Of a DNA stretch of 64,000 bases, positions 46,624 to 53,589 are shown piece after piece (position 1 is the first letter of the stretch; each line of letters opens with the position of its first letter). A program made the translations under genes and the position numbers. Where the stretch lies: sequence record NC_019405.1; one strand, written 5' to 3'. The notes below the pieces were generated by a model. The model was not told the DNA's origin. It saw only the letters and a list, made by a program, of their open reading frames with translations, and did not search any database.

Positions 46624-47400
46624 ATGGCGATCCAGAACCCCCATTCCACCACGCCCGGCGCCATGCCGCACCTGACGCCCGGCGAGATCGGCGTCAACAA
46701 GGCCGACGACATCCTCTGGTTCCGCTCGCAGGGGCGCCGCGTGCCGATCATCCTGAGCGACCTTGACCGCGCCCCGCCGGCGGACGGCTATGTCGGCGCG
46801 CCCCTGACCCTGGTGGACGGCGCGCCGGCCTGGAACGTCAAGCTCTTGCCGTCCTCGATCGTCTCCGGCGCGGTCAAGGTCGATCTCCCGCCCGCCGCCG
46901 GGCTACACGCCGTGCCGAGCGTCCTGCTCCAGGGCCTGGGGGCCGATCGCGCCCTGGCGGCCAATGATCTGGACCTCACCCCCTTCTATGTCCGCTCCGA
47001 CTCCATCACCCTGACCCATCTGGCCTTCAGCGTGCGCTCGGCGGGCGCGCCGGCCATGCGCGTGGGGATCGTCGACAGCTTCGGCGTCGTCCAGGCCGAC
47101 ATCCTGGTCGCCGCGCCGGTCGTGGGGGCCAATGTCGTGGCTCTCTCGCCGGTCCTGACTCTCCAGCGCGGCGTCTACCGCACCATCCTGGCGACGACCG
47201 GGGCGGTGACCGTGGGGATCGCCACGGGCGCGCGCATGGAGCAGGGCTGGGACATCATCGCCGACGCGCCGTCGTTCATCCGGGGCTACAGCGGCAGCAA
47301 GAACACCGGCGGCGGTATCGGGAGCCTGCCGGCGCTGACCCCGCGCCGCGATCCCACGCCGGGCCAGGATCACGCCGTCCTCCTGCGCTGGACGGCGTGA
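46624..47400 (+). CDS. Fibre-associated protein (258 aa)
   Basis: N-terminal STTPG.MP.LTPGEIGVN motif; C-terminus similar to the end of the giant protein. Confidence 0.8.
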   Translation: MAIQNPHSTTPGAMPHLTPGEIGVNKADDILWFRSQGRRVPIILSDLDRAPPADGYVGAPLTLVDGAPAWNVKLLPSSIVSGAVKVDLPPAAGLHAVPSVLLQGLGADRALAANDLDLTPFYVRSDSITLTHLAFSVRSAGAPAMRVGIVDSFGVVQADILVAAPVVGANVVALSPVLTLQRGVYRTILATTGAVTVGIATGARMEQGWDIIADAPSFIRGYSGSKNTGGGIGSLPALTPRRDPTPGQDHAVLLRWTA

Positions 47401-47462
47401 ATCTTGACACTCGGTCGAAATACGGTTAACCTGCGCGCTCATCTGGAGTTTCGAGCGCCATC

Positions 47463-47741
47463 ATGGCCGAGCTTGTCCGCATCTATCACCCCGAGACGAA
47501 CGAGCCGTTCGACGTGATCCCGTCGACCGCCGAACGTCTGCGCCTGGGTCAAGGTCTGGACGGTCTGGTGTGGCTCTCGCAGCCCTTCTCCCGCGCCGCT
47601 GCCGAAGAGCCGGCGCCGGAAGCCCCCAAGGGGCGAGGTCGTAAGCGCGTCGCCGCGCCCGTCTCGGACGAAGCCGAAGCCGAAGCCGAAGACGATGGCT
47701 GGCGTGACGCGCCGACCGAGGACGCTTCCGAAGCCGCGTAA
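47463..47741 (+). CDS. Hypothetical protein (92 aa)
   Basis: After GANTC promoter at 47394; GGAG RBS. Confidence 0.8.
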   Translation: MAELVRIYHPETNEPFDVIPSTAERLRLGQGLDGLVWLSQPFSRAAAEEPAPEAPKGRGRKRVAAPVSDEAEAEAEDDGWRDAPTEDASEAA

Positions 47742-47785
47742 GGCGCTTCCCCGTCCACTCTGCTGAAATTCGGTCTCAGTCCCAT

Positions 47786-47861
47786 GTCGGTCTAGCTCAT
47801 GGGGTAGAGCGGCGGTCTCCAAAACCGCGCGTGGCAGGTTCGAGTCCTGCGACCGGCGCCA
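47786..47861 (+). tRNA. tRNA-Trp(CCA)
   Basis: GCGGT-CTCCAAA-ACCGC arm, TTCGA loop, encoded CCA. Confidence 0.9.
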
Positions 47862-47866
47862 TTTCC

Positions 47867-47941
47867 GCGTCCATCGTATATGGGTTATTGCTTCGCGTTG
47901 CCAACGCGACGAACCGGGTTCGAGTCCCGGTGGACGCTCCA
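47867..47941 (+). tRNA. tRNA-Gly(GCC)
   Basis: TCGCG-TTGCCAA-CGCGA. Confidence 0.9.
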
Positions 47942-47947
47942 ATCCAG

Positions 47948-48021
47948 GCGGATATAGCTCAAAGGGAGAGCTACTGCCTTCCAAGCAGAAGATGCGGGTT
48001 CGAGCCCCGCTATCCGCTCCA
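47948..48021 (+). tRNA. tRNA-Gly(TCC)
   Basis: CTGC-CTTCCAA-GCAG, U73. Confidence 0.9.
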
Positions 48022-48080
48022 AAATTTTCTTCCACGACAAGCTTGACAGCCGTCGAGATTTGTGAGAGCCTTCAACCATT

Positions 48081-48143
48081 ATGACGCACCTCCTGACCCG
48101 TTACGAACGCGAGGCCACCGGCCTCGATACCACCACCGCCTAA
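48081..48143 (+). CDS. Candidate leader peptide (MTHLLTRYEREATGLDTTTA)
   Basis: Immediately after TTGACA...TGTGAGAGCC promoter; overlaps alternative hairpins. Confidence 0.45.
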   Translation: MTHLLTRYEREATGLDTTTA

Positions 48144-48177
48144 AAGCGGTTCTGGTAACCGAGGCCTTTTGTCATGT

Positions 48178-48255
48178 GGCCCGGTCGTCTAGCGGTTTGC
48201 AGGATTCGTGACTTTCAATCACGAGAGCGGAGTTCGAGTCTCCGTCGGGCCTCCA
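48178..48255 (+). tRNA. tRNA-Glu(TTC)
   Basis: CGTGA-CTTTCAA-TCACG. Confidence 0.9.
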
Positions 48256-48277
48256 CCCCAAAGCCTCCTCTGAGCTT

Positions 48278-48352
48278 GGTGCGTTCGTATATCGGTCAAT
48301 ACTCCGGATTGTCGATCCGGCAAGAGGGGTTCGATTCCCCTACGCACCGCCA
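48278..48352 (+). tRNA. tRNA-Asp(GTC)
   Basis: CCGGA-TTGTCGA-TCCGG. Confidence 0.9.
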
Positions 48353-48362
48353 GGGCTTTTCC

Positions 48363-48521
48363 ATGCCGCTCCAGTCGGGTTCGAGCGACGCCGTCGTCTC
48401 GCACAACATCGCCAAGCTGATCGACGAGGGCTACTCCAGGGAGCAGGCCGTGGCGATCGCCCTCTCCCAGGCGCGCAAGCCGCGCCGTCCGAAGGTCTCG
48501 CGCGGCTCGCGCCGGCGCTGA
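48363..48521 (+). CDS. Small conserved phage protein (MPL..G.S..V.S.NI..L..EG...[11 protein letters not shown] family, 52 aa)
   Basis: Recognisable small basic phage family. Confidence 0.8.
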
Positions 48522-48591
48522 CCTCGCCTCGCTAATGCAACCCAGGTTCCCGGCCTCATCGTGAGGCCGCCTGCGGTCGCGCGAGGCTTCC

Positions 48592-48816
48592 ATGACCTTT
48601 CTTGATCTTCGTTCGCAGTCGAGCGCCGTGCTCCTGCGCCATGTGTCTTCCCGATCCCCGATGGCGGAAGCGGCTCGCACCGAGTTGCTGACCCGAGGCC
48701 TCGTCCCGCTCCTCACGCGGCACAACGGCTGGCGCCTCGCCCCGAGCGAGCCCTTTCCGCAGCATCTCATCCCGCGCCCCGATCCGCTCGCGAGGTTCAC
48801 GTGGCGGGCGGGATGA
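48592..48816 (+). CDS. Hypothetical protein (74 aa)
   Basis: GAGG RBS. Confidence 0.45.
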   Translation: MTFLDLRSQSSAVLLRHVSSRSPMAEAARTELLTRGLVPLLTRHNGWRLAPSEPFPQHLIPRPDPLARFTWRAG

Positions 48817-48837
48817 GAGCCGTCTACAGACTATAGA

Positions 48838-49335
48838 CTAGAAAGTTTGGGCCTGGAACGCCCCCATAATGATGCCCGGAGAGGCATGTTCGATGAGCCA
48901 GTGGCGCCCCATCCAGCGAAGGAAGGCGGACAATGGCGTAATGTCTTCAGCGCCAGTCTCTTGATCGAAGGGCAAGATCGCGGACAAGCGAATCTCAAGG
49001 ATTCTACCATAGCTGTTGATGTTCGGATCAGGAGCGGTTGGATAGTAGAACAAAGGAGCGTGATAGATCGCCGGAGCCTGTGCTATGAGCTTAATGGGAG
49101 GCACTTGTATCGGCTCCTGATCCGCCATCGGGAAGGCGATCTTGGAGAACGTCAGGAGGAGGGTATCGCCGATCTTTTCACCGGGAGCGATAACACCCCA
49201 GCGATAATCGGCCGGCCCCGGAGGCGTTCCTGTCTCGGAGAAGGGCTCGGGAATGACATTGACGAGGCTCTCCCCATTCGGGTTCACGAACTCCGCCTTG
49301 TCGAAAGTCGCCGCGCGCAGGATTTTGTAGGACAT
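48838..49335 (-). CDS. Hypothetical protein, lower GC, inverted (165 aa)
   Basis: AGGAG RBS on the minus strand; atypical codons. Confidence 0.65.
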   Translation of the reverse strand: MSYKILRAATFDKAEFVNPNGESLVNVIPEPFSETGTPPGPADYRWGVIAPGEKIGDTLLLTFSKIAFPMADQEPIQVPPIKLIAQAPAIYHAPLFYYPTAPDPNINSYGRILEIRLSAILPFDQETGAEDITPLSAFLRWMGRHWLIEHASPGIIMGAFQAQTF

Positions 49336-49539
49336 AAGCTGCTCCTAAGGTTGAGACGTCCCATCGCTATCGGATTCGGTCCTCGGCTGACAGTGAATAT
49401 TTTTCTCACGACGTGCTTGACATTCGTTTGAAGTTGTGAGAGCCTGTCCAACGTCACGGATCACGACACTCCTCGGAGTGCAAAAGCGCGATCCTTCGTT
49501 ATTCCCAGGCCGCCAGCGGGCGGCCGTTCGAGAGCTATC

Positions 49540-49677
49540 ATGTTCGCCTTGTCGCATAACAGCCTGAGCACGAAAGCCGCCTCCCCGGCGTCGCTTTCGC
49601 TTGCCCCGCTGGCGACGGCCACGAAGCCCTCGACCAAGCCGACCACCTCGGCCTCGCACTCGACGGATCACCTCTAG
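49540..49677 (+). CDS. Candidate small Ala/Ser/Thr-rich peptide (45 aa)
   Basis: GAGAG RBS; lies between promoter 49417 and terminator 49744. Confidence 0.4.
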   Translation: MFALSHNSLSTKAASPASLSLAPLATATKPSTKPTTSASHSTDHL

Positions 49678-49742
49678 GGTATCTCGTCTCGGGTGCAGGC
49701 CTTGGAGCCGCACCCGCTACCAACATCCTGTTGACCTAGCGC

Positions 49743-49780
49743 AAGGCGGCTCCCAGCAAGGAGACCGCCTTTTCTTTTTC
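49743..49780 (+). terminator. Rho-independent terminator
   Basis: AAGGCGG-CTCC-CAGCAA-GGAG-A-CCGCCTT plus TTCTTTTT. Confidence 0.75.
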
Positions 49781-49791
49781 GCGTTGATCAT

Positions 49792-49867
49792 CGGGGTGTA
49801 GCTCAGTCGGTAGAGCGCTCGGTTCGGGACCGAGAGGCCGTGGGTTCGAGTCCCGCCACCCAGACCA
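49792..49867 (+). tRNA. tRNA-Pro(CGG)
   Basis: CTCGG-TTCGGGA-CCGAG. Confidence 0.9.
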
Positions 49868-49874
49868 ACGCCAT

Positions 49875-49949
49875 CGGGATGTAGCTCAGCGGTAGAGCGC
49901 GCGGCTGGGGGCCGCGAGGCCGCAGGTTCGAGACCTGCCACCCCGACCA
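49875..49949 (+). tRNA. tRNA-Pro(GGG)
   Basis: CGCGG-CTGGGGG-CCGCG. Confidence 0.9.
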
Positions 49950-49954
49950 ACAAC

Positions 49955-50027
49955 GCTGCTGCGCCTGGATTGGCGCCGGCCCCTTGGTATGGGGAAGTAG
50001 AAGGTTCAATTCCTTCCGGCAGCACCA
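49955..50027 (+). tRNA. tRNA-Thr(GGT), atypical D arm
   Basis: CCCC-TTGGTAT-GGGG; GCTGCTG/CGGCAGC acceptor. Confidence 0.75.
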
Positions 50028-50032
50028 ACAAC

Positions 50033-50102
50033 GCCGATGCCTCTAGGAGGGAACGTCTTTCGTAATGACGTCAGGTGGGTGCGATCCCCACTTTCGGCTC
50101 CA
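50033..50102 (+). tRNA. Degenerate tRNA-Thr(CGT)-like element
   Basis: GCCGA/TCGGC acceptor plus CCA; ACGTC..TTCGTAA..GACGT arm; T loop GTGCGAT. Confidence 0.5.
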
Positions 50103-50139
50103 TCAAGATGATCGAGGAGAGATCGTAGACGAAACAAAT

Positions 50140-50226
50140 GGATGTGTCACCTCAGTGGCGAGAGGACCGGGCTCTTAATCCGGCAGCGAAAGCTCATCGT
50201 GGGTTCGAGTCCCACCACATCCTCCA
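50140..50226 (+). tRNA. tRNA with Lys(CTT) anticodon and long variable arm (87 nt)
   Basis: CCGGG-CTCTTAA-TCCGG; V arm AGC-GAAA-GCT. Confidence 0.85.
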
Positions 50227-50232
50227 AACTAT

Positions 50233-50323
50233 GCACGAGTGACCCGAGCGGCGAAGGGCGTCGACTTTTAATCGACTAGGCGTCCGCGCCTCACCGAGGG
50301 TTCGAGTCCCTCCTCGTGCTCCA
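50233..50323 (+). tRNA. tRNA with Lys(TTT) anticodon and long variable arm (91 nt)
   Basis: GTCGA-CTTTTAA-TCGAC; V arm AGGCG..CGCCT. Confidence 0.85.
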
Positions 50324-50329
50324 GGTTGT

Positions 50330-50413
50330 GCGAAAGTGGCGGAACGGCAGACGCACTGGTCTCAGGTACCAGCGACTTCGGTCATGAGGGTTCGAATCCC
50401 TCCTTTCGTACCA
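50330..50413 (+). tRNA. tRNA-Leu(CAG)
   Basis: CTGGT-CTCAGGT-ACCAG, type II. Confidence 0.9.
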
Positions 50414-50420
50414 ACGACAT

Positions 50421-50505
50421 GCCGGTCTGGCGGAAATGGCAGACGCAGTGGCTTCAAGTCCCACCGCCTTCGGGCGTCCCGGTTCGAGGCCGGGGACCGG
50501 CACCA
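50421..50505 (+). tRNA. tRNA-Leu(CAA)
   Basis: Loop TTCAAGT, type II. Confidence 0.88.
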
Positions 50506-50510
50506 TTTGA

Positions 50511-50599
50511 TGCGAAGTGGCGGAACTTTGGTAGACGCACCGGCATGAGAGGCCGGCGCCCTTCGGGGCGTGAGGGTTCGAGTCCCTTCTTCGCGACCA
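50511..50599 (+). tRNA. tRNA-Leu(GAG)
   Basis: CCGGC-ATGAGAG-GCCGG, type II. Confidence 0.85.
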
Positions 50600-50606
50600 A
50601 TATCAT

Positions 50607-50678
50607 GCCGGACGGCGCAGGCGCGCGGGGGAGGTTGTGTCCCTCCTTGGCTCCGATCGTTACGGAGGTTCGGTTCCA
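50607..50678 (+). tRNA. Degenerate tRNA-His(GTG)-like element
   Basis: GCCGGAC/GTTCGGT acceptor plus CCA; GGAGG-TTGTGTC-CCTCC; CTCCG-ATCGTTA-CGGAG T arm. Confidence 0.55.
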
Positions 50679-50682
50679 TTAC

Positions 50683-50753
50683 GGGGTATGCGCAGGGCGC
50701 AGGCATCCTTTGCAAGGAAGTCGGGGTGGGTTCGAGTCCCACATACTCCACCA
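50683..50753 (+). tRNA. tRNA-Ala(TGC), reduced D arm
   Basis: G3.U70 acceptor; loop TTTGCAA. Confidence 0.75.
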
Positions 50754-50757
50754 ACAT

Positions 50758-50845
50758 GGTAGGTTGGCTGAGAGGCCGAAGGCGCCCGTTTCGAAAACGG
50801 GAGGACCGCAAGGTTCCGTGGGTTCGAATCCCACACCTACCTCCA
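50758..50845 (+). tRNA. tRNA-Ser(CGA)
   Basis: CCCGT-TTCGAAA-ACGGG, type II, U73. Confidence 0.9.
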
Positions 50846-50849
50846 ACAT

Positions 50850-50937
50850 GGATGTATGGCTGAGAGGCCGAAGGCGCCCGCTTGGAAAGCGGGTGAACCG
50901 CAAGGTTCCGTAGGTTCGAATCCTACTGCATCCGCCA
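50850..50937 (+). tRNA. tRNA-Ser(GGA)
   Basis: CCCGC-TTGGAAA-GCGGG, type II. Confidence 0.9.
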
Positions 50938-50941
50938 ACAG

Positions 50942-51028
50942 GGTAGGTGGTTCCGGCCTGGGGCCGGACCCGGTTGCTAACCGGCCGGAGCCGCAAGGCT
51001 TGGGGTTCGATTCCTCCTCCTACCGCCA
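50942..51028 (+). tRNA. tRNA-Ser(GCT), probable 8/4 fold with extended D stem
   Basis: CCGG-TTGCTAA-CCGG; D stem TCCGGC/GCCGGA. Confidence 0.8.
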
Positions 51029-51340
51029 TTTCGGTGTTGACACCCGCAACGCGGCCTGTCATACGTCACGACAGAGCGAACACCCCCCGGCCGGGTTTGT
51101 TGTCATACCGGGTCGTCACGCCCCGTCGGGGCTCTAGTAGCTCTTCGTGTGGAGTTTTCCGCCTCCCTCCCAGACAAGGAGGCGGACCCAACCAACATCG
51201 CGATCTCCCGTGATCGTCGGCGACGGGCGCCGTCAGAGACCTTTGCCTGCGCGGCTCCGCTGCGGCCCTGGTCTCGTCCCGACCAAATTTTTTCGTCGTG
51301 GTGCTTGACACTGCGAAACTGTTCTGCTAGGGTTCACGTC

Positions 51341-51439
51341 ATGAGCAAGACCTATCGTCAATTTGTGCGCCAGATTCAGGTCGTCCGGAATATCCGGGCG
51401 GGCCGCTCGCGCATGGCTGACGAAGGGTTCCGGGACTAG
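51341..51439 (+). CDS. Candidate near-leaderless small protein (32 aa, MSKTYRQFVRQIQVVRNIRAGRSRMADEGFRD)
   Basis: ATG 6 nt after TGCTAGGGT -10 of a TTGACA promoter; terminator 51468-51501. Confidence 0.45.
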   Translation: MSKTYRQFVRQIQVVRNIRAGRSRMADEGFRD

Positions 51440-51540
51440 GTCCCACTCCACGTTCAACCAGTTTCGCGAAGGCCCGCCTGGACACCCAGGCGGGCCTTTT
51501 CGCATTTCAGCTTCAGATCACGGAGATCGCCAACAGACAC

Positions 51541-51625
51541 GGATGCTTAAAGCTGGAGGGCTCCAGCCGGGGACTGTAAATCCCCTCTCTTCGGAGGAGT
51601 GGTTCGATCCCACAAGCATCCACCA
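51541..51625 (+). tRNA. tRNA-Tyr(GTA), 8/4 fold with 6-bp D stem
   Basis: GGATGCTT/AAGCATCC acceptor; GTGG/CCAC T stem; GGGGA-CTGTAAA-TCCCC. Confidence 0.85.
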
Positions 51626-51630
51626 ACCAC

Positions 51631-51706
51631 GGACTCGTAGCTCAGCAGGTAGAGCGCCGGCTTGAAACCCCGGAGGTCGGAGGTTCGATTCCTCCCGTTT
51701 CCACCA
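51631..51706 (+). tRNA. tRNA-Phe(GAA)
   Basis: Loop TTGAAAC; two acceptor mismatches. Confidence 0.8.
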
Positions 51707-51711
51707 ACAAC

Positions 51712-51787
51712 GCCCGATGAGCCAGATGGGAAGGCGCCGCCGTGACATGGCGGGATTGAGAAGGTTCGATTCCTTCATCAGGCACCA
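51712..51787 (+). tRNA. tRNA-Val(GAC)
   Basis: CCGCC-GTGACAT-GGCGG. Confidence 0.8.
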
Positions 51788-51789
51788 AT

Positions 51790-51865
51790 GCAAGTGTAGC
51801 TCAGTCGGTAGAGCAGCGGACCGATAATCCGCCTGTCCCTGGTTCGAGTCCAGGCATTTGCACCA
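51790..51865 (+). tRNA. tRNA-Ile(GAT)
   Basis: GCGGA-CCGATAA-TCCGC (C33). Confidence 0.85.
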
Positions 51866-51872
51866 ATTCTGA

Positions 51873-51947
51873 TGTGGCATAGCTCAGGGGTAGAGCGCGC
51901 GCTTGATAAGCGTGAGGTCGGGGGTTCGAAGCCCTCTGCCACTACCA
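51873..51947 (+). tRNA. tRNA-Ile(GAT), second copy
   Basis: CGCGC-TTGATAA-GCGTG. Confidence 0.85.
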
Positions 51948-51980
51948 GTTTCCAGGCCGGCGGAGATGCGCCGGACCTGA

Positions 51981-52056
51981 TGGCGTTTAGCATAGTGGGA
52001 GTGCAGGGGTGTCACATACCTCGATCGAACTGGTTCGATTCCAGTAACGCCAACCA
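51981..52056 (+). tRNA. tRNA-Val(CAC)
   Basis: GGGGT-GTCACAT-ACCTC. Confidence 0.8.
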
Positions 52057-52061
52057 ATCGT

Positions 52062-52135
52062 TGAGGGTTCGTCTAACGGTAGGACGGCTGGGTCTGGTCC
52101 AGCTAATCTAGGTTCGAGTCCTAGCCCCTCATCCA
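52062..52135 (+). tRNA. tRNA-Gln(CTG)
   Basis: GCTGG-GTCTGGT-CCAGC. Confidence 0.85.
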
Positions 52136-52142
52136 AGCTTGT

Positions 52143-52216
52143 TCTCGGGTGGTCTAATGGTAAGACATCTGGTTTTGGTCCAGAGGATTGGGGTTCGATT
52201 CCTTGGCCGAGAACCA
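52143..52216 (+). tRNA. tRNA-Gln(TTG)
   Basis: TCTGG-TTTTGGT-CCAGA. Confidence 0.85.
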
Positions 52217-52231
52217 ACTATTTGAGTTTAT

Positions 52232-52306
52232 TCCAGTCAATGCACAAGGTGTGCAGCGGCACTGTTAATGCCTGTGAGCCCGGTTCGATTCCGGGGTCTG
52301 GAGCCA
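52232..52306 (+). tRNA. tRNA-Asn(GTT)
   Basis: GGCA-CTGTTAA-TGCC. Confidence 0.85.
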
Positions 52307-52332
52307 ACACGTCGGCCTCGGCCGGCACATGC

Positions 52333-52415
52333 GCCCTGGTAACCGAGGGGGATTACGAATCCCTTAGTCGTAGCAGGAGTTGAAAAGGGTGGTTCGAATC
52401 CACTCCAGGGTGCCA
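52333..52415 (+). tRNA. D-armless tRNA-Arg(ACG)-like element with ~23-nt variable loop
   Basis: GCCCTGG/CCAGGGT acceptor plus GCCA; GGGA-TTACGAA-TCCC; GGTGG-TTCGAAT-CCACT. Confidence 0.65.
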
Positions 52416-52422
52416 AATTCAT

Positions 52423-52505
52423 AGCGCGCAGGCCGAGCAGGATCATCGTCAGGCGTCGCCCTCCGAAGGCGAAGAGGCCCGGTTCGAGTCCGGGGCGCGC
52501 TGCCA
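52423..52505 (+). tRNA. tRNA-Arg(CCG) with enlarged D loop
   Basis: TCGCC-CTCCGAA-GGCGA; AGCGCGC/GCGCGCT acceptor. Confidence 0.75.
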
Positions 52506-52508
52506 TTC

Positions 52509-52586
52509 GCGCGGGTAGCTCAATGGACCCAGAGCAGCCGTCTTCCACACGGAAGGTTGGGGGTTCGAATCCCTCCCCGTGCGCCA
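52509..52586 (+). tRNA. tRNA with Gly(TCC) anticodon, G3.U70 pair and G73
   Basis: GCGCGGG/CCCGTGC acceptor; CCGT-CTTCCAC-ACGG. Confidence 0.75.
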
Positions 52587-52949
52587 AACTTGACGGGCGA
52601 TGCCGAATCGCTCAGCTTCCCGATTGGCTCTCGATGGGCCGCCACTGCACGCCGCCGGCGCCCTCCCGGTACAAGGAGGGGCGCACGTCGGCGACGTTCC
52701 AACCCAGTTCCGGACGATCTTCGAACGCGGCCTGCCGTGGAGGGGTGCTGGAAGGGCCGGGGTTGTGGAAACCGTCGAGCATCTCCTACTCCGGATCGGG
52801 CCTCCTGGGGGCTCCTCCGGTCAACCAGGGCCTGACCCGACCCCGGAGATGCGCCGTCTACGATCACCCAGGACCGTCCTGGCGGTGGAAAGGGTCTGAA
52901 ATTTTTCTGGCGCTGATGTGTTGACACTCCTCGGAGGCTCGGCTAAAAC

Positions 52950-53052
52950 CAGCAGCGTCAGAGCGGCGTTGGACCACGAGGTCCGCCGCGAGCTTCTGCG
53001 TTGTCGTCAGGAACGGCCCGCCAGCAATCCCGCTGGCGGGTCGTTTCGTTTT
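52950..53052 (+). ncRNA. Candidate ~100-nt small RNA
   Basis: TTGACA (52921)/GCTAAA promoter, long hairpin, terminator CCCGCCAGC-AATCCC-GCTGGCGGG plus T-tract; no ORF. Confidence 0.5.
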
Positions 53053-53172
53053 GGGCGCAATGCGACGTTCAGTCCAACCATGGGTAGTGTCATGAATCTT
53101 GACTTTCGGCTCTTATTCCGGTAGCTTTCCCGACATCAGCAAACGCTCACAAGTCGGGGACCGAGAGCCGTC

Positions 53173-53589
53173 ATGTCGCAAGACCACAACGGCTCGTCCT
53201 CGGGCCAAGAACGCATCTACCAGAAACTGGATGAGCTTGGCTCCATGCACGCGCGCACCCGTGAAGATATTGCCCGCATCCAGGAGATGATGCGAGCCGT
53301 CGGTTCGTCGCAGGAGCGGATCGAAAAGCGCCAGGACCATTTCGAGCGCGAAATCTGGCGTGAGATGGAAGACCGCGCCGCGCGCACGAGCGCCCAACTC
53401 GACGAAATCAAGAGCCACACCAACCTGCGCATCGAGGAGATCGAGGCCAAGGTCGACACGATCCGCGAGGAGCGGATCGCCGAAAAGGCCCAGTGGCGCG
53501 GCCCCGAGAAGGCCATCGCCGCCCTGGTCGCCGTCGCCGGGGCCATCGCCGCCTTCGCCACCATCCTCACTTTCCTGAAGGGACACTAG
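53173..53589 (+). CDS. Coiled-coil protein with C-terminal TM helix (138 aa), possible holin-like
   Basis: GAGAG RBS; after GANTC promoter at 53089. Confidence 0.8.
   Translation: MSQDHNGSSSGQERIYQKLDELGSMHARTREDIARIQEMMRAVGSSQERIEKRQDHFEREIWREMEDRAARTSAQLDEIKSHTNLRIEEIEAKVDTIREERIAEKAQWRGPEKAIAALVAVAGAIAAFATILTFLKGH

Follow-up and report, generated by a model that had tools for sequence, protein, structure and literature searches.

Caulobacter phage phiCbK probably carries, within its tRNA array, a genuine and unannotated class II tRNA-Tyr(GUA) gene whose sequence folds with an 8-bp acceptor stem and a 4-bp T stem (8/4) and has a 6-bp D stem like that of tRNA-Sec. The window analysed here comprises 64,000 nucleotides, bases 1-64000 of the phiCbK genome (NC_019405/JX100813), to which 47000-53000 is 100% identical at matching coordinates, and a cloverleaf tRNA with a GUA anticodon can be read on its + strand at 51541-51625 (Table 1). 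Pairing of the same kind recurs, with compensatory changes, in distant phages and in a few bacterial chromosomes, and an ordinary role in decoding tyrosine codons is the best-supported reading of the sequence.

Structure of the gene

All eight acceptor pairs are Watson-Crick, and the acceptor and T stems together form a 12-bp branch (8+4) in which the 3' acceptor strand abuts the T stem. The initial annotation had described a perfect 8-bp acceptor, a 4-bp T stem (GTGG/CCAC) and a D stem (GCTGGA/TCCAGC) that closes a 4-nt loop, and all three are present. It had also pointed out that canonical 7/5 pairing would need an A-A mismatch, and A51598 ('position 49') would indeed face A51614 under that reading. 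The MFE structure is exactly the 8/4 cloverleaf, at -36.4 kcal/mol (z = -3.0 against dinucleotide shuffles, 1 of 200 being as good), and it pairs U51548 (position 8), whereas U8 is free in canonical tRNAs. The gene has the 8+4 split of the 12-bp branch, the tRNA-Sec-like D arm and the long variable arm of the 8/4 architecture; the free U8 and 3-4-bp D stem of a canonical 7/5 cloverleaf are absent.

The anticodon GUA, at 51576-51578, reads UAC and UAU. Its loop contains U33 and A36-A37-A38, and a 7-nt loop with U33 and A37 is a feature of bacterial tRNA-Tyr. The first acceptor pair is G1-C72 (G51541-C51621). A single nucleotide, C51568, separates the D arm from the anticodon arm; it faces U51586, so that the phiCbK anticodon stem has 5 bp and lacks the sixth pair of the 8/4 type.

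Table 1. Features of the candidate tRNA-Tyr gene of phiCbK and of the hairpin that precedes it, in window coordinates.
Feature	Position	Strand	Details
Annotated rho-independent terminator hairpin	51465-51502	+	38 nt upstream of tRNA-Tyr; marks the start of the sub-cluster
Acceptor, 5' strand	51541-51548	+	GGATGCTT (RNA GGAUGCUU), 8 nt; from sequence and MFE fold
Linker, acceptor to D stem	51549-51551	+	AAA; 3 nt, canonical 2
D arm	51552-51567	+	6-bp stem GCUGGA (51552-51557)/UCCAGC (51562-51567), tetraloop GGGC
Anticodon arm	51569-51585	+	5-bp stem GGGGA/UCCCC, loop CUGUAAA (51574-51580)
Variable arm	51586-51598	+	UCUCUUCGGAGGA, 13 nt, class II; 4-bp stem UCUC/GAGG with UUCG loop, then A51598
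T arm	51599-51613	+	4-bp stem GUGG (51599-51602)/CCAC (51610-51613), canonical T loop UUCGAUC
Acceptor, 3' strand	51614-51621	+	AAGCATCC (RNA AAGCAUCC), 8 nt; abuts the T stem
Discriminator and encoded CCA	51622-51625	+	A73 at 51622; CCA at 51623-51625

Detection and annotation

Neither ARAGORN nor the Rfam tRNA model (RF00005) makes a call at 51541-51625; across the array at 47.7-52.6 kb they find 24 and 21 tRNAs, respectively. The Rfam tRNA-Sec model (RF01852) aligns end to end with 51541-51621; the match, at 42.4 bits (E = 1.3e-7 in a search of 201 nt), falls short of the model's gathering score, 47. A tRNA-Sec identity was rejected because the anticodon is GUA and not UCA, the branch has 12 bp and not 13, and the score lies below the gathering score. 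The element lacks annotation in NC_019405, in Ccr32 and in each of the 26 Caulobacter phage records where it occurs, and the phiCbK genome paper reports no Tyr tRNA in phiCbK-like phages (Gill 2012). The record of a model phage would thereby be corrected, in that phiCbK-like phages do appear to carry a Tyr tRNA gene. More generally, standard finders systematically miss a recurrent lineage, which implies that Tyr is under-counted in surveys of phage tRNA repertoires. Other irregular tRNAs of the same arrays are probably missed by these finders as well.

Conservation in Caulobacter phages

The element is present in 26 Caulobacter phage records by blastn. In Rogue and CcrBL10 (Poindextervirus), similarity to phiCbK starts exactly at G1 and stops after the CCA. 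Shapirovirus and Poindextervirus copies are identical at 80 of 82 nt, in genomes with an overall identity of only ~63% (Gill 2012). The two nucleotides that differ compensate each other, turning the A31-U39 pair into G31-C39 in Rogue and CcrBL10. In the copy of Caulobacter phage RBC63 (L009:105-185), the 5' side of the anticodon stem is one nucleotide shorter (GGGG rather than GGGGG), a deletion that is either a sequencing error or the mark of a damaged copy. Both the eighth pair of phiCbK (U-A) and its A-A combination at 49/65 are identical in the closest homologues, so the choice between 8/4 and 7/5 rests on more distant relatives.

The 8/4 fold in distant relatives

The two folds differ in one point: the nucleotide that follows the 3' strand of the T stem pairs with position 8 in the 8/4 fold and with position 49 in the 7/5 fold. 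A scan of viral contigs with the pattern CTGTAAA...GTGGTTCGANNCCAC returned 124 GUA tRNA-like matches, 99 of them unique; the search patterns fix the anticodon, and its constancy in this metagenomic set is no evidence. Each sequence was anchored on the seven acceptor pairs common to both folds and sorted by D-arm type only, long-D sequences having a stem of at least 5 bp and a loop of at most 7 nt, while the N8-N65 pair was ignored. Among long-D sequences, N8 can pair with N65 in 28/32 (A8-U65 in 11, U8-A65 in 9 and G8-C65 in 8), and A predominates at position 49. Of the 63 canonical-D sequences, 57 fall in the 7/5 class and 50 have U8.

A covariance model (R1) was built from five sequences, and 31 family members, 30 of them distinct, were placed in an alignment (A6); plain MAFFT alignments (A2 and A3) were excluded from pair counts because the 5' ends of some sequences were shifted. 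In A6, which was built from the 8/4 structure and leans toward it, the eighth acceptor pair is kept in 27 of 29 sequences (U-A 10, A-U 9, G-C 8, unpaired 2), and the alternative 49-65 pair forms in 13/29 and is unpaired in 16/29. RNAalifold, which was left to predict a structure from A6 by itself, yields an acceptor of 8 bp, a T stem of 4 bp and a D stem of 5 bp that shows covariation. The D stems of relatives are extended to 5-6 bp with compensatory changes, the linker is AAA in 23 of 31 rows (the others have UCA, AUA, GCC or a different short sequence), and a sixth anticodon-stem pair (A6 columns 34-52) forms in 23 of 30 relatives. All seven loci found in the genome scan (see below) pair N8 with N65; the pattern used for that scan fixed A49 and left position 8 free.

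Pair counts, sorting by D arm alone, RNAalifold and the seven genome loci together point to 8/4, not 7/5, as the conserved fold, and together with the MFE structure they bear out the original description of an 8/4 tRNA with a Tyr (GUA) anticodon. The same gene might instead fold as 7/5 in the canonical manner, tolerating an A49-A65 mismatch, keeping U8 free for a U8-A14 interaction and simply having a longer D stem. This is very unlikely. U8 is the canonical residue, the 49-65 pair is possible in 13/29 sequences and those of the 'both' class fit either fold; against this, position 8 changes to A or G in step with its partner, which becomes U or C, and A persists at position 49, where it would face C or A in 16/29. 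A 7/5 fold would also leave 4 nt between acceptor and D stem and has no A14 to offer in a 4-nt D loop, and both the MFE and RNAalifold calculations select 8/4.

Distribution

Compensated acceptor stems occur in Rhodobacter phage RcXuper, Erythrobacter phage EliS-L02, Sinorhizobium jumbo phage Phosso and Cellulophaga phage Calle_1, as well as in Parvularcula chromosomes and MAGs, and relatives are also found in many uncultured viral contigs. The RcXuper acceptor (GGGUGGGU...ACCCACCC; L003:2494-2578) is fully compensated, and this copy shares with phiCbK the AAA linker, GUA anticodon, GUGG/CCAC T stem and A73-CCA end. In EliS-L02 (L132:1501-1584), the acceptor GGGUAGGU...ACCUGCCC occurs together with a T stem that covaries, GUAG/CUAC. 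Position 8 pairs as A8-U in Phosso, whose T stem is GUUG/CAAC, and as U8-A in Calle_1. The discriminator A73 is shared by every relative listed.

Two of these phages show further details of gene arrangement. In RcXuper, a gene for an RlaP-family RNA-repair nucleotidyltransferase (1312-2301; Pfam PF10127, E 1.9e-10) precedes the unannotated 8/4 tRNA-Tyr (2494-2578), which is followed after 1 nt by an irregular annotated tRNA-Tyr(GUA) at 2580-2670. In Calle_1 (L142), the 8/4 tRNA-Tyr match at 295-376 (R1 score 69.5 bits) shares 45 nt with an annotated tRNA-Ser(TGA) at 332-421; one call or the other is probably mistaken.

A narrow pattern applied to one genome per species, in 185,579 species, gave 7 loci. 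Two lie in the chromosomes of Parvularcula dongshanensis (L137:4123-4206, + strand) and P. oceani (L139:5902-5985, - strand), among MoaA, esterase and alcohol-dehydrogenase genes, which is a chromosomal housekeeping context. The Parvularcula copies have C1-G72, a first pair of the archaeal/eukaryal type, and ARAGORN does not call them. The other five loci are MAG contigs, several with tRNAs nearby. A BLAST search of cultured phages with an L016-type variant gave no match. A DNA pattern based on the D arm recovered, from viral contigs, the known Caulobacter phages and two further contigs (L010 and L011) that are chance matches and not tRNA-like.

The form is a minority one. The share of ~30% 8/4 sequences in the first scan reflects enrichment by the GUGG/CCAC T stem and is not a true frequency. 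In a broader sample of phage GUA tRNAs with any T stem, 95 unique sequences could be classified, 82 of them as 7/5 and none as exclusively 8/4, with only a handful ambiguous. Judged from these sequences, the 8/4 tRNA-Tyr family is recurrent, yet accounts for a small minority of phage tRNA-Tyr genes. The initial annotation had allowed that the gene might prove to be a common, already described form: it does recur, in other phages and in Parvularcula, but it is not common among phage tRNA-Tyr genes, and no description of the Tyr version was found.

Relationship to known tRNAs

Phage 8/4 tRNAs have a precedent in the (8/4) tRNA-Ser and tRNA-His of tRNA clusters in alpha-proteobacterial phages (Mukai 2017, NAR 45:2776, PMC5389517). 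The phiCbK tRNA-Tyr resembles them in its 12-bp branch of 8+4, its long D stem with a tetraloop and its long variable arm, and both are near-misses of the Rfam tRNA-Sec model. It differs from them in having GUA with a Tyr set (A73, G1-C72) rather than a Ser (G73/U73) or His set, and in an anticodon stem of 5 instead of 6 bp. With canonical class II tRNA-Tyr (7/5) it shares GUA in a CUGUAAA loop, A73, G1-C72, the long variable arm and the T loop, whereas its 8-bp acceptor, paired position 8, 4-bp T stem and 3-nt linker set it apart, as does a D arm with a 6-bp stem and 4-nt loop in place of 3-4 bp and a large loop. Its best Rfam match, tRNA-Sec (RF01852), has the same 8-bp acceptor, 6-bp D stem with tetraloop and long variable arm, but a branch of 13 bp (8/5). 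With 12 and not 13 bp in its branch, the phiCbK tRNA should be a substrate of EF-Tu rather than SelB.

The claim that no 8/4 Tyr tRNA had been described stands in so far as full-text literature searches and a 2020 review of non-canonical tRNAs yielded no description of a natural one; the architecture itself is not new and is known for phage tRNA-Ser and tRNA-His (PMC5389517). The main text of Mukai 2017 (PMC5389517) names Ser, His, Cys and Sec, not Tyr, and its supplement with phage clusters may draw one. With the phiCbK gene, tyrosine would join Ser, His, Cys and Sec among the specificities for which a natural 8/4 cloverleaf is known.

Genomic context, transcription and codon use

Five nucleotides (ACCAC) separate the CCA end from tRNA-Phe, which starts at 51631; spacing of 5-8 nt and encoded CCA are the same across the rest of the array. 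tRNA-Tyr heads a tightly spaced sub-cluster, Tyr-Phe-Val-Ile-Ile-Val-Gln-Gln. A sigma-70 promoter scan of 50900-53200 found none, including between the upstream hairpin and tRNA-Tyr. With a terminator-like hairpin upstream and no promoter of sigma-70 type, transcription would need read-through or an unrecognised promoter. Hairpins annotated as rho-independent terminators occur 10-40 nt upstream of three tRNA sub-clusters (48120-48166, 49745-49769 and 51465-51502), and no promoter was recognised between hairpin and tRNA at any of the three. These hairpins may be leaky terminators or processing signals.

Tyrosine codons make up 3.3% of the 11,503 codons in 58 annotated phiCbK CDS (window positions 10598-47400), with 230 UAC and 145 UAU. 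UAU thus accounts for 39% of Tyr codons (145/375) in these CDS. Other codons that end in U or A are rare in this genome of 66% G+C, AGU being 7% of AGY and AAA 9% of AAR. The giant gp076 uses UAU 59 times and UAC 35 times.

Function

Bacterial TyrRS, as known from E. coli and T. thermophilus, relies on an identity set of G34-U35-A36, A73, G1-C72 and a class II variable arm. The phiCbK gene carries the full set: GUA, A73, G1-C72 and a variable arm of 13 nt. The best-supported role is that of an ordinary elongator tRNA, on an unusual scaffold, that would supply Tyr-tRNA during infection. It would be transcribed together with the array, trimmed at its 5' end by RNase P and at its 3' end to the encoded CCA, and charged with tyrosine by host TyrRS, as the presence of the bacterial Tyr identity set suggests. 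Acceptance by EF-Tu and the ribosome is to be expected because acceptor and T stems add up to the canonical 12 bp and because other 8/4 tRNAs translate in E. coli. Mukai 2017 (PMC5389517) showed that tRNAs of the 8/4 and 9/3 types support efficient translation in E. coli. The 8/4 tRNA-Tyr would then decode UAC and UAU. An 8/4 Tyr tRNA would imply that TyrRS, EF-Tu and the ribosome all accept this body plan, which could be useful for orthogonal tRNA design. The scaffold itself is most likely explained by its G+C-rich extended D stem, which would give a self-stabilised core independent of tertiary pairs of the U8-A14 type. Host enzymes that recognise tRNA-Tyr in its canonical form would also be presented with a different core.

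Other accounts of the gene fit the evidence less well. That it is a decaying tRNA pseudogene, or a functionless leftover of array duplication, seems extremely improbable: the silence of tRNA finders, the 'pseudo' flags that tRNAscan gives to other phiCbK array members in Ccr32 and the deletion in the RBC63 copy are what decay might produce, but every stem is intact, distant phages as well as chromosomal loci among housekeeping genes retain the architecture, and identity of 80/82 nt persists between genomes that are only ~63% identical, with a compensatory pair as the sole two differences. Hardly any probability attaches either to an allo-tRNA-type missense tRNA, charged by SerRS (or by LeuRS via A73), that would place Ser or Leu at Tyr codons. 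Most described 8/4 allo-tRNAs do accept Ser whatever the anticodon (Mukai 2017, PMC5389517). The anticodon is also ignored by SerRS and LeuRS, which under this reading would charge the tRNA-Sec-like body with its long variable arm. The phiCbK gene, however, has A73 and not the G73/U73 of Ser-type allo-tRNAs, so that the Ser identity set is incomplete; its variable-arm stem has only 4 bp and is longer in phiCbK's own 8/4 tRNA-Ser (50942-51027); and the gene carries every element of the bacterial Tyr identity set. The canonical D-loop tertiary elements on which Leu identity relies are absent from the phiCbK tRNA.

An anti-defence role deserves separate consideration. tRNA-Tyr is a proven target of anti-phage nucleases in E. 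coli, which makes a divergent phage tRNA-Tyr a test case for escape by body plan. The initial annotation had named Tyr tRNA as a target of retron effectors, and this is correct for Retron-Eco7, whose PtuAB cuts E. coli tRNA-Tyr in the variable loop (PMC11555353; PMC12673091); the link to phiCbK is by analogy only. T5-like phages escape Retron-Eco7 by means of their own tRNA-Tyr, for which an altered variable loop is required (PMC11555353; PMC12673091). Like the T5/SP15 tRNA-Tyr, that of phiCbK is phage-encoded, lies in a tRNA-rich region and has a body that differs from host tRNA-Tyr (PMC11555353; PMC12673091); the T5/SP15 molecules are described as differing in the variable loop, with no 8/4 fold, and their anti-defence role is experimental and from E. 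coli. By extension, the phiCbK gene could be primarily an anti-defence RNA, that is, a nuclease-resistant substitute or decoy for host tRNA-Tyr against PtuAB or Septu-like systems, for which codon supply would be secondary. The T5-like precedent against Retron-Eco7 (PMC11555353; PMC12673091) favours this, and so does RcXuper, where the 8/4 tRNA-Tyr adjoins both an RlaP-family RNA-repair nucleotidyltransferase gene and a second tRNA-Tyr. The proposal is nevertheless very improbable, since Ser and His specificities use the same scaffold in the same arrays and since Parvularcula copies lie among housekeeping genes, where counter-defence makes little sense. To our knowledge, no system that targets tRNA-Tyr is known for Caulobacter, which also counts against it, and we know of nothing there that is comparable to the T5/SP15 anti-defence tRNA-Tyr. 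The Parvularcula copies argue against a purely anti-defence function. A wider version of the idea, by analogy again, is that the whole 8/4 tRNA-Tyr lineage is a dedicated counter-defence scaffold of alpha-proteobacterial and Bacteroidota phages; burial of position 8, remodelling of the D/variable-arm core and shortening of the T stem would leave it chargeable by TyrRS and invisible to nucleases directed at canonical tRNA-Tyr (PtuAB, Septu-like or others), and sibling 8/4 tRNA-Ser and tRNA-His would evade theirs likewise. We consider this unlikely, and an elongator tRNA on an unusual scaffold remains the preferred reading.

Other irregular tRNA-like elements in the array

An unannotated 8/4 tRNA-Ser(GCU) lies at 50942-51027 (+), with G73, an 8-bp acceptor that includes one U-U, and a 4-bp T stem. 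Its long D stem and long variable arm, and a score of 44 bits with Rfam tRNA-Sec, are of the type of the phage (8/4) tRNA-Ser of Mukai 2017. Two unannotated elements sit between tRNA-Pro and tRNA-Lys: a clean cloverleaf at 49955-50027 (+) with anticodon GGU (Thr) and encoded CCA, and an irregular element at 50034-50104 (+) that has a CGU loop, carries UGCGAUC as its T loop and gives no signal of folding (z = -0.14). phiCbK-like phages were reported to lack a Thr tRNA (Gill 2012).

The annotated 'tRNA-Lys' genes with CUU and UUU (50140-50226 and 50233-50323, +) measure 87 and 91 nt and combine a long variable arm with U73. This class II body and Ser-like identity set are odd for lysine tRNAs. 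Further irregular tRNA-like elements occur on the + strand at 50607-50680, 52331-52415 and 52423-52509. One irregular element is CCG-like; phiCbK was reported to have no Arg tRNAs, and CcrBL10 has a tRNA-Arg (CCG), a possible homologue, annotated just upstream of the last tRNA of its array. Another carries ACG in its anticodon loop, and the tRNA-Sec model gives it 22.7 bits. The third resembles tRNA-His(GUG); ARAGORN detects the homologue of this element in Rogue and CcrBL10 but makes no call in phiCbK.
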